A DNA stretch of 64,000 nucleotides, taken from Macrostomum lignano (lineage: Eukaryota). A program made the position numbers and the translations under genes. Positions within the stretch are counted from its first letter, which is position 1, and the number at the start of each line of letters is the position of its first letter. Shown here in pieces: positions 2,098 through 63,100 of this stretch. The notes below the pieces were generated by a model. That model saw nothing but the letters and a program-made list of their open reading frames with translations. It was not told the origin of the DNA and ran no database searches. Where the stretch lies: the NCBI GenBank assembly GCA_002269645.1, contig NIVC01001124.1, positions 62,001 to 126,000 of the forward strand, read 5' to 3'.

Positions 2098-5000
2098 ATG
2101 CCACCCAAAGGAAAAAATGAACCATCAAAAAAGACAGTGGAAAAACAAAAGCAGAAAGTCATAGAGGTAAATAATTTGTTCTATTTTTATATTGCTAATG
2201 ACAAATTTTATGTCTACTTTATAGGCCTAGCTTGTAAACAATAGCAAGTCAATTTGCCAAAAGTTGATTCACCAAAAGTCAATTTGCCAAAAGCAGGTTG
2301 TTTTGCCAAAAGCAGGTTGTTTTGCCAAACAAATAAACCACAAAAAATAAAAAAATAAACAAATGAAGAAATGAAATATTAAATGCTAGATCTAAAACAT
2401 TAAAATCAATCAATGACCCCATCTATAAATAAATAAATAAGGATTATGTAGAATGTAAAATATAGAATATAGAATTTGTAGAATGTTAAATGTTACAACC
2501 ACCTATGTTTTACAAATAAAGTGATAAAACATGTGATGTGCACATTGTGGCTTACAAAACAATAGCCTATAAATTACAAGAAGTTTGCCACATTGTAAGC
2601 TAATTCTTAATTCATTTTTGATTTATAGAGTAAAAGAGAAAATAGTAATATTTTGTAATTAGTGTATAAGTATGTTGTTTGTTTATCTGAAAATTATCTT
2701 TCTCAAGAAGGAACATACATGCGCAACCCTCCTGATTTACACTGGTCATGTGACTTACTTTTTGACCAAAAATGCAACTTACCTGTGAAAGACCCTAACG
2801 CAATTTTGGGTAAACAGCAAGAGTAACTATGACTGTCTTATAAGGGCTAAATGCCTCGTCATCTAATTAGTACTACATCTATATTCTTTAGGCTGGGAAT
2901 TTTTGCAACTTACCCCTAGTCCACCACAATTTACGGTGGCCAGATCGGCCAGGTTGGCCAGCAGTTGCGCATGTATGGGAAGGAATCTTGAAAGATCTCT
3001 TTTGATATATATCAGCTTAACCCAGGATAGAATTCTTGCTTGGGGATAGGAAAACATGCATGTTCATATTTGTGTGCAAGTGTGCATACTAGCTATAAAA
3101 ATAAGTCATAATGTGGATCATTGCCCATGCACAAAAAATGAAATTTTTAGTTTTTCAATTCTATGCCAATGTAAATTAAAAGTTGTACTTCAAATGTAAA
3201 GTAGCTTAAATACTATATTTTTAGAGACAATTTTCTTTACAAATTATAGGAGTTTTACTAAACTTTAAAGTAACTATTTTTGTTAAAAACAATTATTCTT
3301 TATTTTACTTTTGTTTTGAAGTTTTCTAGTGTAAAAACAACCTTCTGGTCTATGAAAAGTAAGAGAACTTGAGTGCATATATATCACATGGCACATAACC
3401 ATGTTGAATGCGTGTAAAAGTCAAATCCTATCTGTGATTCTGCAGCAAACGGCTTCTTGCGTAAGTGCATACGATGGAATAAACATATACCTTTAAGAGT
3501 GTGCAAGTAGGCTCCTTTTTAGCACGCATAAATGTGTAACAACTTTTGTTCAAGAATTCCATCTTGAACTCAACTGCTATACAGTATATATGTGGCAGTT
3601 GTTGCACAAAAAATATATTTCCCACATTTTTATAATAATTAAAAGAATTGTGCCAGTAGGATTAAGTGTTCTGTAGTTGATAATCAATAAAAAATTCTTG
3701 GCAATGACAAATAAAAAATCAAACTCACAACCTTACATGTGTGACTCAAAGTATCACATCATGATGGCAGAAAAAAACTTGTTAGCACTATTGCTAATAT
3801 TGCTATTTGAATTGGTAGATATCAGTTAATTCCCAACCTGGTTTTACAGCAAATTGACTGTAGTGTTGGCAAAAGGGTATTTGGCAAATCATCTCATATT
3901 CTTATAAATTATATAATCTTGTGTTGTAGTAGGCACTTGCAACTTAGCACTTTTGTTGATGGTCATTTTGTCTGCTACCAGTTTGTCTCCAAAAATATGA
4001 TGTAGTTATTTTGTCTGCCAACAAAATAAGCAATTGTTATTTGTCTAGTGACTGAACAAACAAATATGTCTGGTTAAATTGCTAATACAAGTATCTATTT
4101 GTTTAGTGATATAGATTTTAAAGACCTTTTCTTGTATCCTGATTTGAATAATATATTGTTATATACTAATGTCTAAGCAAAGCATATATGTGTGTGCGAT
4201 TTAGCATAATTTGGTATATAAGACATATACTAGTATAACTACATAATAAAGATACAAGTGAGAATTCTTTGAAGTCCAGGAATATTCACCCTTGTAGTTT
4301 CTGTAAAATAGGTATTTTAGAATTATTAATTTTACCAGACAAATAACAAAATGCACATTTGTCTAGTATTAACTGGATGAATAGGGAAACATTTTAGAAG
4401 AGCAAGGTGAGCAGAACTGTGACAACTTTTTATTTTCACAAAGGTCTTTTATACAGAGCATGGGGAGGTGCACGAGAGTGGCATGAGTCAACCCCCGGCT
4501 TAGCAAGCTGGCGAGCAGTGCACCCACCCCCAGGCTAGGCAGCTGGGGGTTTGGAGTGCAAATGTACTGCAACTGTGCTGCATGCAGGCCTGGCCGCCAC
4601 ATGGCTCCCCCCAGCACCGAGTTAGGCTCTGAACTTTGTTGGGCGACACTGTTGAGGTGGCTGCCAGTGGATGGGATGAGCAGTGTTGCGTTGAGGGACT
4701 AGCAGTGGGCGGGTGGTTTTGTCAGTTGTGGCCCATGTCGGTGGGGCCGCAGGCTGTCGAGGTGGGCGGCCACTTGGTCGCACAACTGGCGCCAGAACTT
4801 GCTTGCGCAGATAGAGGATCGCCGGCTTGAGTCTGTCAATGGACACCTGGTCGCGTCGCGTGCCTAGGTCCAACAGGAAGGTCTTTTTGTCGCGTTCTAT
4901 GACCTTGAATGGGCCGTTGTAGGGCTTCTGCAGCGGTGCTCAATGGCCATCCCACGAGGTCGACATGCACGTGGGCGAAGCGCTGGCCCGGCACGCGGAT

Positions 5001-8000
5001 GCTGTCCACTGGAGCGGCGACGTGGCGCTGAACCTTGGTGGTCTGGCAGGCGACGCAGGTCTTGGCCCACTGGCTGACGTCCTTGTTCTGTTGTTCATAC
5101 CGGCCCACACGAACTTGGCGGCGATGAGTCGCCGTGTGCTGCGAACCGACGGGTGGGCGAGGCTGTGGATGGCGTCGAACACAGCGCGGCGAAAGTCCGG
5201 CGGCACCAGCGGGCGCGGCCGGCCAGTCGAGATGTCGCAGAGCAGAGCGACGCCGGGGCTGATCTGCAGCGGCTCAAGCTGAAGACTGGCGCCTGCCTGG
5301 GCGGCTGGGTCCGCTGCCTGCGCCGCGGCCATCGCCGCGTAGTCCACGCGGGGGAGCAGCCCGGGCTGCACCGACGCGACCGTGCAACTGGACAGCGCGT
5401 CCGCCACCGGGTTGTCCTTGCCCGCCACGTGCTGGATGTCCGCGGTGAACTCGGACACGTGGGCCAGATGCCGCTGTTGCCGGGCCGACCACGGGTCTGA
5501 CATTTTGGACATGGCGGCAGCCAGCGGCTTGTGATCTGTGAATGCGGTGAAGTTGCGGCCTTCTAAAAAGTAGCGGAAGTGCCTCACGGCCAGGTACACG
5601 ACGATCGAACGCGCTGTACTTCCGCTCGGGCGGGCGAAGTTGCCGGCTGAAGAAGGCGAGCGGCTGCCAGGCGTCATCCATCCGCTGCTCAAGTGCCGCT
5701 CCGACGGCAACGTCTGAGGCGTCGACGATGAGGGCGATGGATGCATCCGGCCGCGGGTGCGCCAGCATAGCGGCGGAGGCCAACTTGCCAAGGCCTGCTA
5801 CGCCCCGTCGAAAGCGGCTGTCAGCTCGGGCGTCCACCGGACGAGCTTCTCCTTGCCGGCCATGGCCGCGTAGATGGGACGCAGCAGCTGGGCGGCCCGC
5901 GGCACGGCACGAAACGGTGATAGAAGTTGACCATGCCGGCGAAGTCCTGCAGGCCGTTGACGGTGGCTGGTGGCTCGAAGCGGACGATGGCGTCGACCTT
6001 GGATGGCAGCGGCACGGCGCCGGCAGCGCTGATCCGGTGGCCAAGGAAGTCGATCTTACTGCGGCCGAACTCGCACTTGGCCGGGTTGATGAGACCGTTG
6101 CTGGCCAGGCGCTGGAACAGTGTGCGCAGGTGCTCCAGGTGCTGCTGTGGGCTGCGGCTGGCGACCAGGAAATCGTCGATGTAGGCGAAGACGATATCTA
6201 AGTCCTGGCAAACAGAGTCGACAAGGCTGCGTGCAGGCCTGGCCGCCACAACTTAGTTTTAACAAAAAATCCAATGTAGTTTTTGGCCAAAAACGCACCT
6301 ACATGTAAAAGAAACCCTAAAGCAAAATTAATGCAATTTTGGGTAAATGGCAGGAGTAACTATGACTGTCTTATTAAGGTAAAATGCCTCGTTATCTACA
6401 AGATAAAAAACTGATTTTTTTAAAGTGTGAGTGTATCTAAAAATATTATTTTAAGACCCATCAAAGGTTGACTTAACTTATATATGTAAGTATATAATTT
6501 GAAGTTAACTTTATATAAACTTTTCAGTAGGATAGCAAATGCATTATCATCATTGGATCAAGATGGGGCCAGGGATCATAACAATGCTCAGAATCATATT
6601 CAACTGTGAACTACTCTACCTTCTGATTCACTAACAACTAACTGACTATTACAAAATTGTTTTTCAATGAATGTTTAAATTGAATATAATATTTATTTGT
6701 AATTTTGTATTAAACAATATTACACATTCAAAAGAGACATCCCATAACAACTATTTGTATGACTTGCAATATTTTATAATAAAAAATAGCTGTACAATTT
6801 TCATAGCTAAATTTTACTTTTTCTTTTAAAAAAAGTTGTTTTGTCTGCCAGCAGACAAAGTATGCCTGGTTAAATTTGACAAAAATAGACAAAAGTCTCT
6901 GGAGATACATAGCTCTAAATAAACATTCAATCAATTTTTACTTTTTGCTTTTTAACCTTTTATTTAAACACGCAGGACAAGACATTTGGCTTGAAGAACA
7001 AGAAGGGTGCCAAACAGCAAAAGTTTGTACAACAGGTGTCTAAGCAGGTAACTTTGGGCAACAAAAGCGCAAGAGAAGTTGAAATAGCCAAGCAGGAGAA
7101 GGAAGCCAAGAAGGAAGAGAAGAAAAAGCAGGCAGCCGAGCTGAACGCCCTGTTCAAGCCAGTGGCCGAGCTGCAGAAAGTCGCTCACGGAGTCGATCCC
7201 AAATCCGTGCTGTGCCAATTCTTCAAGCAGGGCAAATGCACCAAAGGAGACAAATGCAAATTCTCTCACGACTTGTCCATCGCTCGAAAAACAGAGAAAC
7301 GATCCATCTACGATGGCGAAGGCGCGGACAAAGGCGCTCAGGACTCGATGGAGAACTGGAGCCAGCAGCAGCTAGAAGAGGTTGTTAATAAAAAGCACGG
7401 CGAATCAGAGCGCAGTCTACCGCCTACGACAATTATCTGCAAGTACTTTCTAGACGCTGTTGAGGACAATAAATATGGCTGGTTTTGGAGCTGTCCAAAT
7501 GGCGAGAAGTGCCACTACAGGTGATTGATTTTAAAATGGCTTAACAATTTCGGATTATACATTTGTTACTAATATCTAAAAAATACTAAAACTCTCTCTC
7601 TAAAGTAATACCTAATTCCTATTGTAATCGAAAACATTCTATTCCCATAATAGATCCCAAATATCCCCAATATAAATCTCTATTCCCATAATAAATCCCA
7701 AATATCCTCAACAAAAAATCTATTCCCATAATAGATCCCAAAATATCTCCAAAAGAAATCTCTATCCCATAATAGATCCCAAAATATCCCCAACAAAAAT
7801 CTCTATTCCCATAATAGATCCTAAAATATCCCCAACAAAAAATCTATTCCCATAATAGATCCCAAGACCCAAATATCCCCAATAAAAATCTATTCTCGTA
7901 ATAGATCCTAAGAGATCCTAATAAATCTATTCTCATAATAGATCCTAAAATATTCCCAACAGAAATCTCTATTCCCATAATAGATCCCAAATATCCCCAA

Positions 8001-11039: not shown

Positions 11040-12150
11040 CACTGAAGTACCGGACGGTAACCAGCCTGAAGTATCGGACGGTAACCAGCCTGAAGTATCG
11101 GATGGCAAGCACACTGAAGTATCAGAAGGCAAGCACACTGAAGTATCGGATGGTCACCAGCCTGAAATATCGGACGGTAACTAGCCTGAAGTATCGGACG
11201 GTAACTAGCCTGAATTATCGGACGTTAACTAGCCTGAAGTATCGGACAGTAACCAGTCTGAAGCATCGGACGGTAACCAGCCTGAAGTATCGGACGGTAA
11301 CTAGCCTGAAGTATCGGACGGTAACCAGCCTGAAGTATCGGATGGTAACCAGCCTGAAGTATCGGACGGTAACCAGCCTGAAGTATCGGATGGTAACCAG
11401 CCTGAAGTATCGGATGGTAACCAGCCTGAAGTATCGGACGGTAACCAGCCTGAAGTATCGGACGGTAACCAGCCTGAAGTATCGGACGGTAACCAGCCTG
11501 AAGTATCGGATGGCAAGCACACTGAAGTATCAGAAGGCAAGCACACTGAAGTATCGGATGGTCACCAGCCTGAAATATCGGACGGTAACTAGCCTGAAGT
11601 ATCGGACGGTAACTAGCCTGAATTATCGGACGTTAACTAGCCTGAAGTATCGGACAGTAACCAGTCTGAAGCATCGGACGGTAACCAGTCTGAAGCATCG
11701 GACGGTAACCAGCCTGAAGTATCGGACGGTAACCAGCCTGAAGTATCGGACGGTAACCAGCCTGAAGTATCGGACGGTAACCAGCCTGAAGTATCGGACA
11801 GTAACCAGTCTGAAGCATCGGACGGTAACCAGTCTGAAGCATCGGACGGTAACCAGCCTGAAGTATCGGACGGTAACCAGCCTGAAGTATCGGATGGTAA
11901 CCAGCCTGAAGTATCGGACGGTAACCAGCCTGAAGTATCGGATGGTAACCAGCCTGAAGTATCGGACGGTAACCAGCCTGAAGTATCGGATGGTAACCAG
12001 CCTGAAGTATCGGATGGTCACCAGCCTGAAGTATCGGAAGGCAAGCACACTGAAGTTTCAGAATGCAAGCACACTGAAGTATCGGAGGGGAGCCACCCTG
12101 AAGTATCAGAAGGCAAGCACACTGAAGTATCGGAGGGGAGCCACCCTGAA
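11040..12150. repeat. 24-bp tandem repeat (intergenic)
   Basis: (CCTGAAGTATCGGACGGTAACCAG)n; produces the spurious LKYRTVTS ORF. Confidence 0.92.
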
Positions 12151-12825
12151 TACAATATTGGAACTAGGTTTCAATGCTGGATGTAATCTTGGCTATGAAA
12201 GTGCGGCTATAATGGCCTGTCAATCATAAAGCACAGAAGCGCACTAAAATTAATCGATTTGCGCAGGAAGCTGGAAGAAAGGATTTGCCATACTTGTGAT
12301 GAAAACAGCTGGCATAATTATCGACTTAGCTATATGGCTGCAGATGAGTCATCAGTTGCAGCTACATGGCACTACTTGAACAGCAGCAGGACCAGAGCTT
12401 AAAAACGCACACAGGCTGGTCTGTAGCTCCTCCCGCGCCCGTCCAGGTTCCTCCGCGGACGTCGTCAGCCTGCAGGCACTGGGCCGCGGTATCCTGCTGT
12501 TACCTCTATAGACCGGCCTCTGTTGACGCCCCTAAATTGTGCCCACTCTGCCCATTTGTACACTTCAGCGCAACAACCCCCTTTTCGGTCACGCTATACG
12601 CCTCTCTCTCTGCCAGCCATCCCCGATACCCCAGTTACTTCCATCATCGTCGGCTTGCCCCAACACAGTCAAATCCCCCGGTGAAGGCTGAACAAGACTG
12701 GGAGCGAGTCATCCTCTAACCTCCGCTAGTTTTTTTCCCTTGTAGTTCCTGTCCCGGTAGACCAATTCACCAGCTAATCCTTCATTCTTTCTATTGGAAA
12801 TTTTTGCCAATATTGACTGCGCAAC

Positions 12826-16659: not shown

Positions 16660-19600
16660 ACTTCCTCTGAAAAATGTCCGCTCTCTGAAGACTTTCATCT
16701 CCGCTCTCTGAAGACTTTCATCTCCGCTCTCTGAAGACTTTCATCTCCGCTCTCTGAAGACTTTCATCTCTACTCTCTGAAGACTTTCATCTCTACTCTC
16801 TGCAGACTTTCATCTCCGCTCTCTGAAGACTTTCATCTCCGCTCTCTGAAGACTTTCATCTCCGCTCTCTGCAGACTTTCATCTCTACTCTCTGAAGACT
16901 TTCATCTCCGCTCTCTGAAGACTTTCATCTCCGCTCTCTGAAGACTTTCATCTCTACTCTCTGAAGACTTTCATCTCTACTCTCTGCAGACTTTCATCTC
17001 CGCTCTCTGAAGACTTTCATCTCCGCTCTCTGCAGACTTTCATCTCCGCTCTCTGCAGACTTTCATCTCTACTCTCTGCAGACTTTCATCTCCGCTCTCT
17101 GCAGACTTTCATCTCTACTCTCTGCAGACTTTCATCTCTACTCTCTGCAGACTTTCATCTCTACTCTCTGCAGACTTTCATCTCCGCTCTCTGCAGACTT
17201 TCATCTCTACTCTCTGAAGACTTTCATCTCCGCTCTCTGCAGACTTTCATCTCCGCTCTCTGCAGACTTTCATCTCCGCTCTCTGAAGACTTTCATCTCT
17301 ACTCTCTGCAGACTTTCATCTCTACTCTCTGAAGACTTTCATCTCCGCTCTCTGCAGACTTTCATCTCCGCTCTCTGCAGACTTTCATCTCCGCTCTCTG
17401 CAGACTTTTATCTCCGCTCTCTGCAGACTTTCATCTCTACTCTCTGCAGACTTTCATCTCTTCTCTCTGCAGACTTTTATCTCCGCTCTGCAGACTTTCA
17501 TCTCTACTCTCTGAAGACTTTCATCTCCGCTCTCTGCAGACTTTCATCTCTACTCTCTGCAGACTTTCATCTCTACTCTCTGCAGACTTTCATCTCCGCT
17601 CTCTGCAGACTTTCATCTCTACTCTCTGCAGACTTTCATCTCTACTCTCTGAAGACTTTCATCTCCGCTCTCTGCAGACTTTCATCTCCGCTCTCTGCAG
17701 ACTTTCATCTCCGCTCTCTGCAGACTTTCATCTCTACTCTCTGCAGACTTTCATCTCTACTCTCTGCAGACTTTCATATCTACTCTCTGCAGACTTTCAT
17801 CTCTACTCTCTGAAGACTTTTATCTCCGCTCTCTGCAGACTTTCATCTCCGCTTTCTGCAGACTTTCATCTCCGCTCTCTGAAGACTTTCATCTCCGCTC
17901 TCTGCAGACTTTCATCTCCGCTCTCTGCAGACTTTCATCTCTACTCTCTGCAGACTTTCATCTCTACTCTCTGCAGACTTTCATCTCTACTCTCTGAAGA
18001 CTTTCATCTCCGCTCTGTGCAGACTTTCATCTCCGCTCTCTGCAGACTTTCATCTCTACTCTCTGAAGACTTTCATCTCCGCTCTCTGAAGACTTTCATC
18101 TCTACTCTCTGCAGACTCATCTCTACTCTCTGAAGACTTTCATCTCCGCTCTCTGCAGACTTTCATCTCTACTCTCTGAAGACTTTCATCTCCGCTCTCT
18201 GCAGACTTTCATCTCTACTCTCTGCAGACTTTCATCTCTACTCTCTGCAGACTTTCATCTCCGCTCTCTGCAGACTTTCATCTCTACTCTCTGCAGACTT
18301 TCATCTCTACTCTCTGAAGACTTTCATCTCCGCTCTCTGCAGACTTTCATCTCCGCTCTCTGCAGACTTTCATCTCCGCTCTCTGCAGACTTTCATCTCT
18401 ACTCTCTGCAGACTTTCATCTCTACTCTCTGCAGACTTTCATCTCTACTCTCTGAAGACTTTCATCTCCGCTCTCTGCAGACTTTCATCTCCGCTCTCTG
18501 CAGACTTTCATCTCCGCTCTCTGCAGACTTTTATCTCCGCTCTCTGCAGACTTTCATCTCTACTCTCTGCAGACTTTCATCTCTTCTCTCTGCAGACTTT
18601 TATCTCCGCTCTGCAGACTTTCATCTCTACTCTCTGAAGACTTTCATCTCCGCTCTCTGCAGACTTTCATCTCTACTCTCTGCAGACTTTCATCTCTACT
18701 CTCTGCAGACTTTCATCTCCGCTCTCTGCAGACTTTCATCTCTACTCTCTGCAGACTTTCATCTCTACTCTCTGAAGACTTTCATCTCCGCTCTCTGCAG
18801 ACTTTCATCTCCGCTCTCTGCAGACTTTTATCTCCGCTCTCTGCAGACTTTCATCTCTACTCTCTGCAGACTTTCATCTCCGCTCTCTGCAGACTTTCAT
18901 ATCTACTCTCTGCAGACTTTCATCTCTACTCTCTGAAGACTTTTATCTCCGCTCTCTGCAGACTTTCATCTCCGCTTTCTGCAGACTTTCATCTCCGCTC
19001 TCTGAAGACTTTCATCTCCGCTCTCTGCAGACTTTCATCTCCGCTCTCTGCAGACTTTCATCTCTACTCTCTGCAGACTTTCATCTCTACTCTCTGCAGA
19101 CTTTCATCTCTACTCTCTGAAGACTTTCATCTCCGCTCTGTGCAGACTTTCATCTCCGCTCTCTGCAGACTTTCATCTCTACTCTCTGAAGACTTTCATC
19201 TCCGCTCTCTGAAGACTTTCATCTCTACTCTCTGCAGACTCATCTCTACTCTCTGAAGACTTTCATCTCCGCTCTCTGCAGACTTTCATCTCTACTCTCT
19301 GAAGACTTTCATCTCCGCTCTCTGCAGACTTTCATCTCTACTCTCTGCAGACTTTCATCTCTACTCTCTGCAGACTTTCATCTCCGCTCTCTGCAGACTT
19401 TCATCTCTACTCTCTGCAGACTTTCATCTCTACTCTCTGAAGACTTTCATCTCCGCTCTCTGCAGACTTTCATATCCGCTCTCTGCAGACTTTCATCTCC
19501 GCTCTCTGCAGACTTTCATCTCTACTCTCTGCAGACTTTCATCTCCGCTCTCTGCAGACTTTCATATCTACTCTCTGCAGACTTTCATCTCTACTCTCTG

Positions 19601-22600
19601 AAGACTTTTATCTCCGCTCTCTGCAGACTTTCATCTCCGCTCTCTGCAGACTTTCATCTCCGCTCTCTGCAGACTTTCATCTCCGCTCTCTGCAGACTTT
19701 CATCTCCGCTCTCTGCAGACTTTCATCTCTACTCTCTGCAGACTTTCATCTCTACTCTCTGCAGACTTTCATCTCTACTCTCTGAAGACTTTCATCTCCG
19801 CTCTGTGCAGACTTTCATCTCCGCTCTCTGCAGACTTTCATCTCTACTCTCTGAAGACTTTCATCTCCGCTCTCTGAAGACTTTCATCTCTACTCTCTGC
19901 AGACTTTCATCTCTACTCTCTGCAGACTTTCATCTCTACTCTCTGAAGACTTTCATCTCCGCTCTCTGCAGACTTTCATCTCTACTCTCTGAAGACTTTC
20001 ATCTCCGCTCTCTGCAGACTTTCATCTCTACTCTCTGCAGACTTTCATCTCTACTCTCTGCAGACTTTCATCTCCGCTCTCTGCAGACTTTCATCTCTAC
20101 TCTCTGCAGACTTTCATCTCTACTCTCTGAAGACTTTCATCTCCGCTCTCTGCAGACTTTCATCTCCGCTCTCTGCAGACTTTCATCTCTACTCTCTGCA
20201 GACTTTCATCTCCGCTCTCTGCAGACTTTCATATCCGCTCTCTGCAGACTTTCATCTCCGCTCTCTGCAGACTTTCATCTCTACTCTCTGCAGACTTTCA
20301 TCTCCGCTCTCTGCAGACTTTCATCTCCGCTCTCTGCAGACTTTCATCTCCGCTCTCTGCAGACTTTCATCTCCGCTCTCTGCAGACTTTTATCTCCGCT
20401 CTCTGCAGACTTTCATCTCTACTCTCTGCAGACTTTCATCTCTACTCTCTGAAGACTTTCATCTCCGCTCTGTGCAGACTTTCATCTCCGCTCTCTGCAG
20501 ACTTTCATCTCCGCTCTCTGCAGACTTTCATCTCTACTCTCTGAAGACTTTCATCTCCGCTCTCTGCAGACTTTCATCTCTACTCTCTGCAGACTTTCAT
20601 CTCTACTCTCTGAAGACTTTCATCTCCGCTCTCTGCAGACTTTCATCTCTACTCTCTGAAGACTTTCATCTCCGCTCTCTGCAGACTTTCATCTCCGCTC
20701 TCTGCAGACTTTCATCTCCGCTCTCTGCAGACTTTCATCTCTACTCTCTGCAGACTTTCATCTCCGCTCTCTGCAGACTTTCATCTCTACTCTCTGCAGA
20801 CTTTCATCTCTTCTCTCTGCAGACTTTCATATCTACTCTCTGCAGACTTTCATCTCCGCTCTCTGAAGACTCATCTCTACTCTCTGCAGACTTTCATCTC
20901 TACTCTCTGCAGACTTTCATCTCTACTCTCTGAAGACTTTCATCTCCGCTCTCTGCAGACTTTCATCTCCGCTCTCTGCAGACTTTTATCTCCGCTCTCT
21001 GCAGACTTTCATCTCTACTCTCTGCAGACTTTCATCTCCGCTCTCTGCAGACTTTCATATCTACTCTCTGCAGACTTTCATCTCTACTCTCTGAAGACTT
21101 TTATCTCCGCTCTCTGCAGACTTTCATCTCCGCTTTCTGCAGACTTTCATCTCCGCTCTCTGAAGACTTTCATCTCCGCTCTCTGCAGACTTTCATCTCC
21201 GCTCTCTGCAGACTTTCATCTCTACTCTCTGCAGACTTTCATCTCTACTCTCTGCAGACTTTCATCTCTACTCTCTGAAGACTTTCATCTCCGCTCTGTG
21301 CAGACTTTCATCTCCGCTCTCTGCAGACTTTCATCTCTACTCTCTGAAGACTTTCATCTCCGCTCTCTGAAGACTTTCATCTCTACTCTCTGCAGACTCA
21401 TCTCTACTCTCTGAAGACTTTCATCTCCGCTCTCTGCAGACTTTCATCTCTACTCTCTGAAGACTTTCATCTCCGCTCTCTGCAGACTTTCATCTCTACT
21501 CTCTGCAGACTTTCATCTCTACTCTCTGCAGACTTTCATCTCCGCTCTCTGCAGACTTTCATCTCTACTCTCTGCAGACTTTCATCTCTACTCTCTGAAG
21601 ACTTTCATCTCCGCTCTCTGCAGACTTTCATATCCGCTCTCTGCAGACTTTCATCTCCGCTCTCTGCAGACTTTCATCTCTTCTCTCTGCAGACTTTCAT
21701 CTCCGCTCTCTGCAGACTTTCATATCTACTCTCTGCAGACTTTCATCTCTACTCTCTGAAGACTTTTATCTCCGCTCTCTGCAGACTTTCATCTCCGCTC
21801 TCTGCAGACTTTCATCTCCGCTCTCTGCAGACTTTCATCTCCGCTCTCTGCAGACTTTCATCTCCGCTCTCTGCAGACTTTCATCTCTACTCTCTGCAGA
21901 CTTTCATCTCTACTCTCTGCAGACTTTCATCTCTACTCTCTGAAGACTTTCATCTCCGCTCTGTGCAGACTTTCATCTCCGCTCTCTGCAGACTTTCATC
22001 TCTACTCTCTGAAGACTTTCATCTCCGCTCTCTGAAGACTTTCATCTCTACTCTCTGCAGACTTTCATCTCTACTCTCTGAAGACTTTCATCTCCGCTCT
22101 CTGCAGACTTTCATCTCTACTCTCTGAAGACTTTCATCTCCGCTCTCTGCAGACTTTCATCTCTACTCTCTGCAGACTTTCATCTCTACTCTCTGCAGAC
22201 TTTCATCTCCGCTCTCTGCAGACTTTCATCTCTACTCTCTGCAGACTTTCATCTCTACTCTCTGAAGACTTTCATCTCCGCTCTCTGCAGACTTTCATCT
22301 CCGCTCTCTGCAGACTTTCATCTCTACTCTCTGCAGACTTTCATCTCCGCTCTCTGCAGACTTTTATATCCGCTCTCTGCAGACTTTCATCTCCGCTCTC
22401 TGCAGACTTTCATCTCTACTCTCTGCAGACTTTCATCTCCGCTCTCTGCAGACTTTCATCTCCGCTCTCTGCAGACTTTCATCTCCGCTCTCTGCAGACT
22501 TTCATCTCCGCTCTCTGCAGACTTTTATCTCCGCTCTCTGCAGACTTTCATCTCTACTCTCTGCAGACTTTCATCTCTACTCTCTGAAGACTTTCATCTC

Positions 22601-24390
22601 CGCTCTGTGCAGACTTTCATCTCCGCTCTCTGCAGACTTTCATCTCCGCTCTCTGCAGACTTTCATCTCTACTCTCTGAAGACTTTCATCTCCGCTCTCT
22701 GCAGACTTTCATCTCTACTCTCTGCAGACTTTCATCTCTACTCTCTGAAGACTTTCATCTCCGCTCTCTGCAGACTTTCATCTCTACTCTCTGAAGACTT
22801 TCATCTCCGCTCTCTGCAGACTTTCATCTCCGCTCTCTGCAGACTTTCATCTCCGCTCTCTGCAGACTTTCATCTCTACTCTCTGCAGACTTTCATCTCC
22901 GCTCTCTGCAGACTTTCATCTCTACTCTCTGCAGACTTTCATCTCTTCTCTCTGCAGACTTTCATATCTACTCTCTGCAGACTTTCATCTCCGCTCTCTG
23001 AAGACTCATCTCTACTCTCTGCAGACTTTCATCTCTTCTCTCTGCAGACTTTCATCTCCGCTCTCTGCAGACTTTCATCTCCGCTCTCTGCAGACTTTCA
23101 TCTCCGCTCTCTGCAGACTTTCATCTCCGCTCTCTGAAGACTTTCTTCTCTTCTCTCTGCAGACTTTCATCTCCGCTCTCTGCAGACTTTCATCTCCGCT
23201 CTCTGCAGACTTTCATCTCCGCTCTCTGCAGACTTTCATCTCTACTCTCTGCAGACTTTCATCTCTACTCTCTGCAGACTTTCGTCTCCGCTCTCTGCAG
23301 ACTTTCATCTCTGCACTCTGCAGACTTTCATCTCTACTCTCTGCAGACTTTCATCTCTACTCTCTGCAGACTTTCATCTCCGCTCTCTGCAGACTTTCAT
23401 CTCCGCTCTCTGAAGACTTTCATCTCTACTCTCTGCAGACTTTCATCTCCGCTCTCTGCAGACTTTCATCTCTACTCTCTGAAGACTTTCATCTCTACTC
23501 TCTGCAGACTTTCATATCCGCTCTCTGCAGACTTTCATCTCCGCTCTCTGAAGACTTTCATCTCTACTCTCTGCAGACTTTCATCTCCGCTCTCTGCAGA
23601 CTTTCATCTCTACTCTCTGAAGACTTTCATCTCTACTCTCTGCAGACTTTCGTATCCGCTCTCTGCAGACTTTCATCTCTACTCTCTGAAGACTTTCATC
23701 TCCGCTCTCTGCAGACTTTCATCTCCGCTCTCTGCAGACTTTCATCTTCGCTCTCTGCAGACTTTCATCTCCGCTCTCTGCAGACTTTCATCTCTACTCT
23801 CTGCAGACTTTCATCTCCGCTCTCTGCAGACTTTTATCTCTACTCTCTGCAGACTTTCATCTCTACTCTCTGCAGACTTTCATCTCTACTCTCTGCAGAC
23901 TTTCATCTCTTCTCTCTGCAGACTTTCATCTCTACTCTCTGAAGACTTTCATCTCCGCTCTCTGAAGACTTTCATCTCTGCTCTCTGCAGACTTTCATCT
24001 CCGCTCTCTGCAGACTTTCATCTCCGCTCTCTGCAGACTTTCATCTCCGCTCTCTGCAGACTTTCATCTCCGCTCTCTGCAGACTTTCATCTCCGCTCTC
24101 TGCAGACTTTCATCTCCGCTCTCTGCAGACTTTCATCTCTACTCTCTGCAGACTTTCATCTCCGCTCTCTGCAGACTTTCATCTCCGCTCTCTGCAGACT
24201 TTCATCTCCGCTCTCTGCAGACTTTCATCTCCGCTTTCTGCAGACTTTCATCTCCGCTCTCTGCAGACTTTCATCTCTACTCTCTGAAGACGCATCTCTG
24301 CTCTCTAAAGACTTGAATCTCTACTCTCTGCAGACTTTCATCTCTGCTCTTTAAAGACTTGAATCTCTACTCTCTGAAGACTTTCATCTT
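16660..24390. repeat. 7.7-kb 23-bp satellite array with internal higher-order duplications
   Basis: (ACTTTCATCTCCGCTCTCTGCAG)n, about 335 units, with CCG/CTA and GCAG/GAAG variants. Confidence 0.97.
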
Positions 24391-27819: not shown

Positions 27820-29867
27820 TCAGCCAAGGACACCTGGAAATAGCGAGGCCGATTGGTTTTACTCTGCAAAATGCATTGGATAGATAACATTTTTCCTGCC
27901 TTTTTTAGGCAAGGCAAGCTTCCAACAATTCATTTATTACGTTAGATATGATATTAATAACCGCAAATAGATGCCCTGGCGCAACGCCTTCAGCGACCCT
28001 CACACAAGGGTGTACAACGGCGCCTTCGTGTGTGTGAGTAGCACGACAACGCCCATTCGAAATTGGGGAGAGAGGTCAACATGTACTCTACTCAATAAAT
28101 AAAAAACACTTGAGAATGCGATGAATTTGCCCCATCCTTCTTAACGCTTTAATTGCGGCCTTCAAAGTATTGTGTTTTTTATCGCTTCTCATTTTGTAGA
28201 ATATAGTACAGCGCTACTATTTAACTACTCGAGTACTTCAATAGTAGTATGATGCAAATCCATCGCTGAATTTTTAACAGTATTCATAATGCATCTGCTT
28301 CATTGCCTTAAAATTAATTGCTGTGTTAGTTAGTTCACAGCTTCTGTAGTTGACTAAAGTTAGCAAAATTTAGAATTGACTCACTGCATGTTAGTTTGCG
28401 AATAATGTTTTTGTTTGATGAGCTATTGAAATCTGCAAATTATGAAAAAAAAATTGAAAATTACTTGTCTAACATTTTGTGGGTAACGCACTGATTAGGC
28501 TTGTGCTAAGCTTTTCTGCCTTAAATATATTATATATTCAGCATTCGCACATCATTCTTCTGGAATAACGTTACCGTTTTGTTCATCACTAGTATAATAC
28601 GACAGTATTGAGTCTGTCCTGTTATAAGTTTATAAAACACCCTAATCTGAGGACAAAGTGGCATAGTCTCGGGATAAATCGGCATAGTTTTGGGATAAAG
28701 TGGCTCACAGTTTGATAATTAGGGTGGCGCAATATTAAAATAAAAACGGACACATTTAGGTAATCGAATACTACAAGAACAACATTGTACTTTCTACAAG
28801 AACTGAGTATACAGTTCATTTGATCAGCAAAAGATTTAAAATTAATAGCCACGGGCAAGGGTTCACCCGAGTGCTCAACCCTAATTCAACAGGGCTACAC
28901 TGTGTCAGCCAGCCAGACAAAGATAATTGATTAGCTGCAGCATGACTCTGTCAGACGGAAGGTGGAGGAGGAGAGAGAAGGAATTTTAAGAGCCATTAAA
29001 ATTCGCAACGGGCTTTGCAACCCCCGTTTTTAACCATCGTATTCAACTGAGGTGCTCAATTACTGGCTGATAACAATCTTGTTTTATAAATGACTGTTTC
29101 AACTGGATTAAGAGTGGGTGGTCCAGCACGGCGCCTCTTGTGTGCCAGCGGCCCAGGCTCCATTCCAAGTGCAGTCACATTAATTTATGGCTAAATCGGA
29201 ATCTCGGCTTGGCTCTGCTCGTGCAATTAGCGGCCTTGTAGGCCAACCCCCAAGGCACAGTGAAGTGTACATGCCTAACGATAATTAAAGTTATGGCCGC
29301 TGTGCACTCCTGTGTGAGTGTGTGCCTGTGCGTATGACTGCGTACGTATCTGCCGCTTGTGTGCCTGTGTCCGCGCTTGTGTGTCCAGAGATATGCAGCA
29401 TCGGAGCCTGCAAATTAGCGGCATTTTGGCGAGTTTTGCCGAGGGCACCACTGTCCATGGCATCGGCAGGCTGAGCCAGGGCCCCTCGGTCAAGAGGCTG
29501 CTGTGGTGCTGCATCGTGACCGCGGCCTGTGTGGGATTCAGTTTGCACCTGTCCGAGGTTGTGCAGCACTACCTGTCTTATCCCGTTGGCACCGAGTTTC
29601 TTGCCGACGAAGAGAATTTCCAGTTTCCCGACGTCACTTTCTGTCCGACTAATCTGATCTCGGATGACTACGGGCACGACCCGGTGCCCAGCAACTACAG
29701 CCTGCCAGGTGAGTTGGGGAATGGCTTTGATGATATTTTGGTAAACCTATGGGAATGAGCGGAATCCCTTTAGAAACTTTTTGAAACCTTTGGGAGTCTT
29801 AGGGAAGCCTTAACAACCATCGGGACCTTAAGCCTGAAGGCTTAAGAACCTTCAGGATCTCAGGAAA

Positions 29868-37010: not shown

Positions 37011-37645
37011 CATGCATCTTTCAGGTCATAAAACAATATTACCAATGACAGAGCAGATCTGGCGGTTCAGAAGTTGCTCAAACAAAAAAGAAGACAATAA
37101 AGCATAAATACACCAGTGTAAAAAGCAGTTACGCCAGCAGAAGCAAGAGCGAATTCGAAAGAGAGACGCATCGCCAAGCAGCAGGGCGAATACTGCATAG
37201 CAACTAGCTTGATAACTGCTATAGTGACTAGATATAAGTTAAAAAAATTGAGGAACTCAAGGTTAAGGGTAGGTGAGAGAAGGGTAACCGCTATTCAAAA
37301 TCTATTGTAAAATTGTATTGTAAAACTCTCATTGCAATCAGCAACAACAGAAATAAAAGCAACAAGTACGCGCACTGTCGGGGCACAGGGAAAAACAAAG
37401 CGACTAGAAATTAGCTCTTATTCGCGAACTGGGACAACCGCAGCTGGCTAGGCTATATCATTGATAAATAAGTAATTAGCAAACACACAGAAACCGAGGG
37501 ACGCACTCAGATAGACAGCTAATATTACAGTTTTAAAACAGATGTTTAAACAGTACAGTGCACACACAAGAGCAGAGACAACACGGAGAGAAAAAACGAA
37601 AAAACGGCGATTGGCTTTTTACTATTTTTATAGTTATTAGCCATT

Positions 37646-37706
37646 GGGTAAACGGCGGGAGTAACTATAACTGTCTTAATAAACCGAATTGCCTCGTCAT
37701 TTAATT
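37646..37706 (+). other. Dispersed 28S rRNA-derived fragment, copy 3
   Basis: GGGTAAACGGCGGGAGTAACTATAACTGTCTTAATAAACCGAATTGCCTCGTCATTTAATT: 52/61 identical to the LSU consensus by hand count. Confidence 0.85.
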
Positions 37707-37860
37707 TCCATGATAATTAGTCATTAAACCCAACTCCAGATAATGATAGGACAGGCTGACTACTGAAAAATACTTTGTATGTATCCAGAAAAAAACAACA
37801 ATCGTCTTGTGATAATTGAATTTAAGTCTGCCGTTGCTACGCCGTTGCTAATTGGGTCGT

Positions 37861-60197: not shown

Positions 60198-63100
60198 TGC
60201 GTGCGAGTGCAGCGTTTGTATCAATAGGGATCAAAAGAGGCCAGCAGGGATTAAAGAGAGCCTTTGCAACGCACTTCGCTCTCGTCTCGCCAATAAACAG
60301 TGAAGATGAGGGAGGCGCTGTCAAACTTGGCAATGAGGATGCTGGCTCATCTACAGAAACAGGGGTATTGTAGATTGTAGAAATGCTAAAATGTTTCTTA
60401 TGGTAAGTATCAATGATAAGCAGAGTATATACATATTGAATGTTATAATAAAATCATTATAATACAGTTTCTATTATATCCTGCTTACCCTAAAAATTTA
60501 ATGGGAGCTCAAGAATTTCATTCTTTCCTATCTCTTTCTAGACAATCATAAAATGAAAATGCAATGTATATAAAAATGCATCAACTGCTAATCTATGTAG
60601 ATATATAATGTAACTGGTATTTACATGAATATAGATTTTTAAACTGATTTTAAGGAACTAGAACCTAATGAAAACCAGAATCTTGAATTCCAGTATAGAA
60701 ACAGCCAAAGCAAAGCAAGACATTGGGGCAAAAAACTTTGCCCCAAGAAACCCTTTGCAGAAAAACTTTAGCAAGAAACCTGCCTGCAGGAAAATCTGAT
60801 AGACACATATAAATCAATATCAGTTATTTGCAAGGTATAACTAGAAACTTCAAGTCAAATATATTGTATTGTAATACAATATCTGGTTCATTAGAAAGTT
60901 CTCATAGTTTATGCAATGTTATATGATCAACCAATTTTTCAATATACCAAATGATAGATATAGTCTATACCTATATATATATATATCTTCATTTTATATA
61001 GAGAAAACATTCTAAAAAGTCTATCCAGATATTCAGAATATTCTGAAAATTTTCAAAACTGCAAGTTTTTTAAAACTTTCGAATAATACTATATTAAAAC
61101 TTTAAGAATATAAAATGGTTAGAATTTTTTATAAACAATTTTGACTTTGTAAAGGGTTTTAATAATGTTAATTTTGACCTTTAACTCTTCTTTCATAGCT
61201 TAAACCTAAATCTATATAGCCTAGAATGTATAAAGAATAATGAATCAATATAATTACCAAAACATAAAAAATGAAGTTTTTAGGATATAGAGATTATTAC
61301 ATATAATATATAATTTTGCTAGAATAATTTAAGCATAATTCTAAGAACATTACAACTTGCTATAAAACATATAATTATTTATAAATCTAACTTGTATTTT
61401 TAAATGCTATGTTTTGATACATTTTATGTAGATTCATACTTTGAAATAGTACATATAGGCCTAGCATTTACATAAAATATAAAAAACATATATATTATTT
61501 TCCAAAAATTTATTTAGGATTGGCATATACTGTGCCACCTTTCTAACTATAACTATGTTTATTTTTGTGTATTAGGGATGTTATAGTATCCTGAATTTCA
61601 AAATCATATCTTCAAATTAGACCTTAGATATGATTTTGCTTTTTAGCATTAATAAAAACCTAGGCTAGGCCTAGGTGTTTTTTTATGCAATAGAGATACT
61701 AATCATATTTTGACTTTCTAAATTGCATACTAAAATTTGACACTGATGCGATTTTGCATCTTAGTGCTAACAAAAAACCTAGACTATAAACTTAATCTAA
61801 AGTTTATTAAATATAAAAAATTAATTCAAATAAAAAGCAAAGTTTAGTACCTTGATTTTCTTTGCCTTATAATAGATATGAAACCAGAGACAGTATAGTA
61901 TTCCCAATTTAATTGGGAGCAATAGATAGATGACCACCCTTCTATCCAAATGAATTTATAGAATTTGAACATAATATTGCTAAAATCTTATAAATGCATT
62001 ATATATATGCTTGAGTTTTATAGGGTAGTTACCTTTTCCTTGGCCTTTCCCAAAGGACAAAAGAGAGTGTGTGCCCCAAAAAGAATAGGAGACTTTTAGG
62101 AAAATAGTCATTTAGGGGCTTTAGCCCTATTATCCCTTGAATTATCATAGCAAAGGAGTTAGAATTCATTGAATTGGGAAATAATTATATGTAAAAAATA
62201 CAAAAAGCTTGCATGCATAGTAGCCATCCACCCAATGTTTTAATTGCATACATGGCAGCTATCTTATATATAGTAAGTCATATATTGTTTGAATTAATAT
62301 TCAAATTAACAAAAAATAACAATGAATTAAGATTATATTTAGTATACATGGTGTATATAAAATCTAGGTTTATTTTTTGTGTGCTAAATATGCAAATTTT
62401 AAAATTCCACCCTGAAATTAAAAAGTGGATGTGGTTTAGGTGCAGTCTCTTAACCTGTTTTTCCATTAAAGCCTCATTTGCACTGCCTTAAAATAAAAAA
62501 GAGAAATTGCACCCTGGCCTTAAATCATATCTTAAAATTGAGCATAGGGAACAATTTTGCACCTTGTCTCTGGTGAAAAGTAAATCCTGTATGGGATAAA
62601 ACATTATAAAACAATATATTAACAAAAATTTTTTGATCAGGTTTAGTTAGTAGCAATGCAAAAATTTGAGAAAAGGGTCCAATTTACTATAGTGCAATAT
62701 AGGGCCTATAACCAGCTGCCAACTGCCGTGCTCGCAATTAAAACACTAGGTGGACAGCTGCTGTGCACACAAGCTCTCCGAAAAAATATAGGCATTTGCC
62801 TAGGTCTAAGACAAATACACTTTATTCCGGTACTAAGTTACAGTACTCTAGTTTTTAAACTACAAGGTAACATTGTGGTTATTCTGTAACGTCATAAATA
62901 GCAGGATTTTCTTTAATTCAAGTTCTAGAACTGTTTCAATCAATGTCATTTGAATTTGAACCTAAGCTAAGCTAAACAGAAACAGAAGCTAAACAGAAGG
63001 TGAAGATACAGAGGAAAGGTTGAAAAAACGACTAGATCGTTTAGAAAATTATAGTCTGCTTTTTGTAGGTTATAAATTTTAATTATAATAAAAACCATAA

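Follow-up and report, generated by a model that had tools for sequence, protein, structure and literature searches.

The genome of the flatworm Macrostomum lignano contains, on contig NIVC01001124.1 of NCBI GenBank assembly GCA_002269645.1, a 64,000-nucleotide (nt) stretch (positions 62,001 to 126,000 of the forward strand, hereafter the window) that encodes a ZC3H15-like protein and a DGK-theta kinase. Three short segments of this stretch resemble one part of the 28S ribosomal RNA (rRNA) gene, the part centred on the insertion site of the R2 retrotransposon. Two of them lie in the first intron of the ZC3H15-like gene, and the third lies beyond the stop codon of the DGK-theta gene on the opposite strand. 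What are these segments, and why does the 9-nt centre that an original prediction described as scrambled differ between them? Our answer, which we hold with good though not full confidence, is that the segments form the middle cargo carried by a family of non-coding cut-and-paste DNA transposons of ~265-276 bp, that is, of MITEs (miniature inverted-repeat transposable elements).

On the + strand, the segments starting at 2808, 6341 and 37646 share 50/60, 47/60 and 51/60 positions with the universal 28S stretch, and no other position on either strand of the window reaches 36/60. Scored as 61-mers they give, from highest to lowest, 52, 51 and 47, well above the values from 200 shuffles of the window (mean best 31.4, maximum 35), so the three ~60-bp matches first read by eye are real. 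The reference string used at that time is identical to the Rfam large subunit (LSU) consensus; the string for comparison with the ribosomal DNA (rDNA) of M. lignano is CTCTCTTAAGGTAGCC. In a 401-nt search, positions 2819-2873 aligned to positions 2255-2310 of the Rfam model LSU_rRNA_eukarya (E=4.5e-4), and at the gathering threshold no family passed in the whole window, nor did any rRNA. A weak Rfam match to the small nucleolar RNA (snoRNA) snR63 at 2816-2866 on the - strand (E=0.37) has its sole cause in the antisense relation of that strand to 28S, and there is no evident C/D box snoRNA.

The three segments share features that rDNA lacks. The similarity to 28S begins at an identical G in all three, the GCGC of rDNA ahead of it is replaced by TT in each (by TTTT in copies 1 and 2), and all three read CTGTC, a C>G change relative to CTCTC. 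The distance from TCTTA to AAATGCC is exactly 8 nt in the three window copies, as it is in all six family copies described below, and these 8 nt, the core, hold about half of the mismatches of each window copy against 28S. Most of this had been noted from the raw letters, and the common non-rDNA ancestor proposed on that basis proves correct. In addition, the similarity between copies 1 and 2 continues for about 50 bases upstream into sequence that is not rDNA (2756-2865 versus 6277-6398), and the 60-mer is therefore not the entire repeat unit.

Copy 1 is a complete element of 264 bp (2714-2977, + strand) with the 28S cargo at its centre. Its limits were set by the family profile, which nhmmer places at 2712-2975 (E=1e-78), and by the homology with a paralogous copy, L005c, which starts and stops at the same limits. 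The element begins with the terminal inverted repeat CATACATGCGCAAC (2714-2727) and ends with GTTGCGCATGTATG (2964-2977); these 14-nt repeats are 100% complementary, stand 236 nt apart, and are the sole two matches to the motif in the window at up to two mismatches (0.15 expected by chance). Candidate target-site duplications, read from the sequence, flank them: AGAAGGAA at 2706-2713 and GGAAGGAA at 2978-2985 are identical at 7/8 positions, and their single difference is a transition. The 28S-derived cargo, by alignment to 28S, occupies 2808-2873, from about -36 to about +27 relative to the R2 insertion site, with the 28S-like part at offsets 93-157 of the 264, and the variable 8-nt core delimited by comparison within the family is TAAGGGCT at 2841-2848. 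No open reading frame (ORF) of at least 50 amino acids (aa) lies wholly inside 2714-2977, and two short ORFs merely cross the edges of the element.

The other two window copies, both on the + strand, are less complete. Copy 2 (6268-6398; profile positions 36-164, E=3.6e-35) is truncated at both ends and abuts a pol fragment of a long terminal repeat (LTR) retrotransposon, and its 28S-like part spans 6341-6398. Copy 3 (37644-37706) is old, and the family profile still detects its 28S-like part only (E=1.6e-11); a local alignment nevertheless runs through to TTTGTATGTATCC at 37774-37786, possibly a decayed right inverted repeat (compare GTTGCGCATGTATGG in copy 1). On the strand opposite to the DGK gene it lies ~155-215 nt past the stop codon, and its paralog ~200 nt past the corresponding stop, so copy 3 is probably in the 3' untranslated region (UTR), antisense to the DGK gene. 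Searches of the window with the terminal inverted repeat motif returned no additional elements. The terminal motifs by which longer related elements would be recognised are CCTATTGCAGCGCATGG or CATACATGCGCAAC.

Since M. lignano is described as a recent polyploid (PMC5704211, PMC10733133), sister loci were expected and can serve as natural controls. Three contigs of the assembly carry the ZC3H15 locus. The window's own, NIVC01001124.1 (L004), is 100% identical to it over 7.1 kb, window position 1 falling at L004 position 7904; contig NIVC01000525.1 (L003) is the sister subgenome contig, with 96-97% identity to the window, and NIVC01001716.1 (L005) is a more distant paralog. L003 carries an extra 276-bp block inside the LTR-retrotransposon fragment, at the equivalent of window position ~5400. 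This block (L003 16403-16678, - strand) is a family member. It is flanked on both sides by the 10-mer CGCGCTGTCC, which occurs a single time at the empty target site of the window (5390-5399, - strand). Near its ends are the perfect 14-bp inverted repeats ATTGCAGCGCATGG and CCATGCGCTGCAAT; in both copy 1 and the L003 insertion such repeats either coincide with the ends or lie no more than 3-5 nt from them. The 28S-like stretch of the block lies at offsets 107-170. An inserted element with inverted repeats and a 10-bp direct duplication, set against an empty site in the window, is the signature of a cut-and-paste event that took place after L003 and the window diverged. Adjoining the insertion, at L003 ~16690-16730 (window ~5400-5420), a 21-bp unit GCAAGGACAACCCGGTGGCGG is tandemly duplicated in L003 and single in the window; this duplication may have arisen as a side effect of the insertion or of its repair.

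The family extends across the related loci. L003 also carries orthologs of copies 1 and 2, and the 28S-like 61-mer of the copy 2 ortholog (from L003 17391) is identical to that of copy 2. L005 holds two further decayed members, L005b and L005c, both within intron 1 of the paralogous gene; L005c aligns with copy 1 end to end, and by eye the differences look mostly like G>A and C>T transitions. A paralog of copy 3 occupies the same relative place at the paralogous locus (L006 28988-29050), with 97% identity over the surrounding 270 bp; the ZC3H15 introns of these paralogs can no longer be aligned. In total, blastn and the nhmmer profile found six independent insertions in ~166 kb sampled (copies 1, 2 and 3, the L003 insertion, L005c and L005b), and the family copies share non-rDNA sequence beside the 28S-like part. 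In 39 kb of new paralogous DNA and 6 kb beyond the window (loci L006 and L007), the copy 3 paralog was the only family member. If the density is typical, extrapolation would give a genome-wide copy number in the thousands. Four of the members sit in first introns of ZC3H15 paralogs; each paralog has two, and their orientation is reversed from one paralog to the other (2712-2977 and 6268-6398 in the window; 11974-12200 and 12556-12805 in L005), an arrangement that could reflect a hot spot, an old inversion or chance.

How much of the 28S gene was taken up? The similarity is limited to ~63-71 nt, and in the young L003 copy it covers ~71 nt, ending in …CTAATTAGTACCGCGC. Against the 28S flanks, both arms of the L003 insertion and the 5' arm of copy 1 score no better than shuffled sequence (three of the four arm tests), and the 3' arm of copy 1 is marginal, with 29/500 shuffles scoring at least as high as the real arm. 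The idea that 28S homology reaches into the arms was therefore dropped. In the L003 copy, the 3' end of the captured piece is directly followed by its own inverted form (ATTAGTACCGCGC, C, GCGCCGTACTAAT), a 13-bp fold-back palindrome that would be explained by template switching at capture. A genuine 28S rDNA or pseudogene fragment was rejected as well: all copies have a common left boundary rather than the random boundaries of rRNA fragments, a possibility raised at the outset, three of the four arms show no similarity to the 28S flanks beyond shuffles and the fourth is marginal, and no Rfam match passes the gathering threshold.

The core is the most puzzling part of the element. The family consensus, from four well-kept copies, is TTAAGGCT, compared with AGGTAGCC in rDNA, and the individual cores are TAAGGGCT in copy 1, TTAAGGTA in copy 2, TCAAGCCT in the L003 element, ATAAACCG in copy 3, TAAAGACT in L005c and TTTAGGCT in L005b. 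As aligned, they read as relatives of a single altered founder core in which TTAAGG is retained but shifted by three bases. The original prediction had seen a different string in each copy; the strings do differ, but they share a consensus and are not unrelated. Its expectation of an enrichment confined to the core holds among the sampled copies when measured against the family consensus: on a star tree, 10 of 20 within-family changes fall in 8 of 66 columns (Fisher P=2e-5; P=6e-4 in a permutation over any 8-nt window), and both 28S-like flanks remain ~95% identical to the consensus. The core also lies at the element midpoint. In copy 1 the midpoint is 2845.5 and the core 2841-2848; in the 276-nt L003 copy the midpoint is 138.5 and the core 140-147, 1.5 nt off.

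Comparison of each resident copy with its counterpart at the same locus gives a different picture. Copy 1 and its L003 ortholog diverge by 5.8% over 311 bp, and their 28S-like parts differ at 4/60 positions, every one a transition in a flank and three at CpG; copy 2 and its ortholog show no differences in this part; and copy 3 and its L006 paralog show one, again in a flank. Pooled, the three pairs have 5 changes in 156 flank positions and none in 24 core positions, compared with about 5-7 core changes expected at the roughly nine-fold excess seen between copies. Resident copies are therefore not being hit at the core. Once inserted they change neutrally, and the core differences arose between source elements or at transposition.

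Base composition offers a reason why bare 60-mers, rather than whole elements, were noticed in the raw sequence. The window is depleted in CpG (observed/expected ratio, O/E, 0.57, versus 1.04 for GpC). In the young L003 insertion the 106-nt 3' arm has 23 CpGs (O/E 1.8) and the 28S-like part has two; in old copy 1 the arms have an O/E of 0.46-0.6. M. lignano retains DNMT1 and DNMT3, with low 5-methylcytosine (PMC11292947). CpG-rich young arms, CpG-poor old arms and a CpG-depleted window together suggest that the arms erode faster, probably via C>T and G>A, and that the AT-rich, CpG-poor 28S-like island stays recognisable; the 60-mers would have caught the eye because this island is the most recognisable remnant. 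By eye, without computation, the ~45 nt of non-rDNA sequence just upstream look about as conserved as the island, and if so the rDNA-like part is not specially protected.

These observations are best accommodated by a MITE family with a 28S cargo. The elements are short and non-coding (264 and 276 bp), copy 1 and the L003 insertion have terminal inverted repeats, and the filled and empty sites establish a target-site duplication, with decayed 8-9 bp candidates at older copies. Of the earlier suggestion that the segments were the cargo of an rRNA-derived short interspersed element (SINE) or MITE, the inverted repeats, the duplications and the filled/empty pair bear out the MITE, and the SINE falls away. 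In the scenario that we propose, a founder element would have taken up about 63-71 bp of 28S rDNA, likely by template switching during gap repair. This founder would already have had the TTTT/GGG left junction, CTGTC, an altered centre close to TTAAGGCT and rDNA-like spacing. A transposase encoded elsewhere would then have dispersed copies, with 8-10 bp of target duplicated at each insertion, and the inserted copies would decay neutrally, the arms fastest.

Several points weigh against this interpretation. The ORFs scanned contained no autonomous partner and no transposase domain. The termini of copy 1 and the L003 insertion differ, the one looking like the other's reverse complement, which requires either two or more subfamilies or a pair of families with an inner module in common. 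One target duplication measures 10 (or 9) bp and those of two old copies ~8-9 bp, which does not establish any single length; 8-10 bp is compatible with hAT, Mutator or Merlin and is not decisive. The empty site proves one insertion only. The reference for every 28S comparison is the universal string or Rfam consensus, not the 28S of M. lignano itself. Finally, a concentration of half of the between-copy changes in eight central positions (P=6e-4) is not what neutral decay by itself would predict.

The last point is where other explanations of the core enter. The one that fares best, although we would still bet clearly against it, regards the midpoint hot spot as a by-product of gap repair: strands refilled from both ends meet in the centre of the element, and errors accumulate there in the source lineages. 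The core spans the midpoint of copy 1 and lies 1.5 nt off it in the L003 copy, and its differences predate or coincide with insertion. On the other hand, the idea is drawn purely from two elements of one family, in-register annealing should be error-free, and the constant length of the core is left unexplained. In any case, transposon biologists may be interested in a mutational hot spot that falls exactly on an element's midpoint.

It is improbable that the element is instead a functional mimic of the R2/rDNA target, or decoy, in which the two 28S-like halves are kept by selection in the source elements and the core is free to vary or selected to be uncleavable. The clustering of between-copy changes in the core, with flanks ~95% identical to the consensus, is what such a mimic would show. 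The conserved blocks of the module would also correspond to the upstream and downstream R2 protein-binding regions. Furthermore, flatworm R2 lineages exist, some without target specificity (PMC5035012). Yet the non-rDNA sequence upstream, ~45 nt, is by eye about equally conserved, the resident flanks change neutrally (5/156 nt across the three pairs), no R2 or other rDNA-specific element was found in the ORFs tested, and no copy carries an insertion at the site. The original prediction had offered bindable but uncleavable decoys among its options, and no sign in favor of them emerged: the ten longest non-repeat ORFs gave no match to R2, Pokey or His-Cys homing endonucleases. We accordingly give little credence to the related proposal that the halves are bound by an rDNA-targeting protein or by the element's own machinery while the core escapes cutting. 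If it were true, the element would imitate, in a mobile form that cannot be cleaved, the site at which ribosomal genes are parasitised most heavily.

A retroposon, SINE-like or mobilised by a long interspersed element (LINE), that contains a 28S piece in the manner of SINE28 is less probable still. Duplications that vary between 8 and 10 bp would suit target-primed reverse transcription, and copy 3, of which the inner part alone is detected, could be read as a truncation. However, the terminal inverted repeats of two copies are perfect over 14 bp, no A-rich or LINE-like tail is present at the proven 3' end (…GCTGCAATCAGG), ARAGORN and Rfam revealed no tRNA-, 5S- or 7SL-like head (ARAGORN found no tRNA in the window), and copy 3 seemingly keeps a decayed right terminal repeat. 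The inverted repeats, the missing pol III head and the missing tail rule out a SINE in particular.

The least credible account is the one in which the resident cores are repeatedly cleaved by an rDNA-specific nuclease, such as the R2 endonuclease or an I-PpoI-like enzyme, and imprecisely repaired. The core is indeed the most variable part of the copies, which is what had led to the suggestion of cut-and-repaired off-target sites. But the pairs of copy 1 and copy 2 with L003 and of copy 3 with L006 show 0/24 core changes next to 5/156 in the flanks, when ~5-7 would be expected in the core at a nine-fold excess. The spacing of 8 nt is kept in 6/6 copies, where end-joining would give insertions and deletions, and the cores share a consensus instead of being independent scrambles. 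Excision footprints, also proposed earlier, do not fit, for the 28S piece is uninterrupted and internal, 93-107 nt from the ends and not outside the termini.

Further candidates were discarded. An R2 or other rDNA-specific insertion would leave a TTAAGG/TAGCC element junction, which no copy has, and the 28S-like stretch is uninterrupted; near the copies there is no R2 reverse transcriptase or endonuclease, the sole retroelement being a Ty3/gypsy-type pol fragment. A non-specific flatworm R2, or a fish R2 with a 28S-like 3' UTR (PMC5035012), is at odds with copies that span both sides of the site. A rod-like or ribozyme RNA (retrozyme) found no support, as the predicted fold is closed by the terminal repeats only (z about -2.3). 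Pairing of the 28S-like halves into a hairpin with the core as loop comes down to a 5-bp ATGAC/GTCAT match and was rejected by eye.

A metagenome scan for GAGTAACTATRACTGTCTTA returned two contigs, L001 and L002, and neither belongs to the family. The 22-nt match of L001 is, on a rough estimate, of the kind produced by chance. In L002 (Ga0066190_10018534), positions 69-150 of the - strand form a stretch of 81 nt that resembles 28S, with the C>G among its 4 mismatches and with non-rDNA surroundings. This stretch stops exactly at the R2 site, after TTAAGG, and unrelated sequence follows, so that from its letters L002 looks like an R2 5' junction outside rDNA; it shares the C>G because of the search pattern.

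The genomic setting of the copies was also characterised. Two joined exons of the ZC3H15-like gene are 100% identical to M. lignano PAA71954 (P0121). Within intron 1 of this gene, at 4622-6249 on the - strand, lies the GC-rich, frameshifted Ty3/gypsy-type pol fragment, with RVT_1, RNase H and integrase zinc-binding domains. Its L003 counterpart is ~3.1 kb longer (L003 12293-15386), and the window copy is therefore internally deleted; a protein search with the LTR pol ORF gave no M. lignano match. The DGK-theta gene was modelled by hand as 11 exons from 60197 to 37861 on the - strand, with GT-AG boundaries at all introns. One of two models (972 aa) is exactly PAA71956.1, and its sister PAA64773.1 is on the L005 contig. 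The product has three C1 regions and RA, DAGK_cat and DAGK_acc domains, and the introns hold minisatellite arrays of up to ~2.6 kb. When an exon of this gene was used in a representative protein search, no M. lignano protein was returned and the best match was 37% identical.

Two other features of the window stand apart from the element family. Long minisatellites pack introns and intergenic DNA, at 16677-24389 and in about 40 further arrays; one, intronic in a Q-rich gene of 506 aa, consists of 336 repeats of a 23-bp unit, and the corresponding L003 array is only ~1 kb. At 29318-29758 on the + strand, an exon encodes the start of an amiloride-sensitive sodium channel (ASC) domain (E=1.7e-15) and has no public gene call.

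The M. lignano family has relatives of several kinds among known mobile elements, and the comparison brings out what is particular to it. The R2 elements, including those of fish and flatworms, are alike in that the captured stretch is centred on the R2 site and that R2 can carry 28S-like sequence (PMC5035012); the copies here, however, have no reverse transcriptase, endonuclease or R2 junction, and their 28S part spans both sides of the site. Dispersed, seemingly scrambled R2 target sites are here transposon cargo and not evidence of nuclease off-targets, a false lead that the present analysis may help others to avoid. Pokey and its derivative mPok in Daphnia belong to the piggyBac elements and insert at TTAA in the same 28S stretch. 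The resemblance to the M. lignano family is that a DNA transposon and its MITE derivatives have a link with this conserved 28S region, but in Pokey the 28S sequence lies outside the ends and the duplications are TTAA, whereas here it is internal and the 8-10 bp duplications are not TTAA.

Closer in content is the mammalian SINE28 (PMC4994717), also a mobile element that spreads an internal stretch derived from 28S, but a retroposon, while the M. lignano element has inverted repeats and no tail. Table 2 of a 2024 review (PMC10946416) tabulates rDNA-derived transposable elements: 5S-derived SINEs and terminal-repeat retrotransposons in miniature (TRIMs), SINE28, and repeats derived from the intergenic spacer (IGS) in Pokey/mPok. 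No DNA-transposon MITE with sequence from the 28S gene body appeared in the excerpts of that table consulted, and with the present family the few mobile elements known to contain rRNA-gene sequence are joined by a DNA transposon. It also provides a marker for subgenome comparison in M. lignano, one insertion being polymorphic between sister contigs, and a possible case, in a flatworm with DNA methyltransferases still present, of CpG-rich arms that decay faster than the CpG-poor core between them.

In structure, the nearest counterparts are MITEs and the DNA transposons that carry gene fragments, such as Pack-MULEs and transduplicating hAT or Mutator derivatives. Like these, the M. lignano elements are short and non-coding, have inverted repeats and 8-10 bp duplications, are dispersed in introns and UTRs, and hold a captured fragment of a host gene between their ends. 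They differ in that the captured piece comes from the body of the 28S gene rather than from a protein-coding gene, and in that two kinds of terminus enclose one inner module. The family is in this sense a MITE with captured host sequence, and it takes its place beside the mobile carriers of rRNA-gene sequence that are already known.

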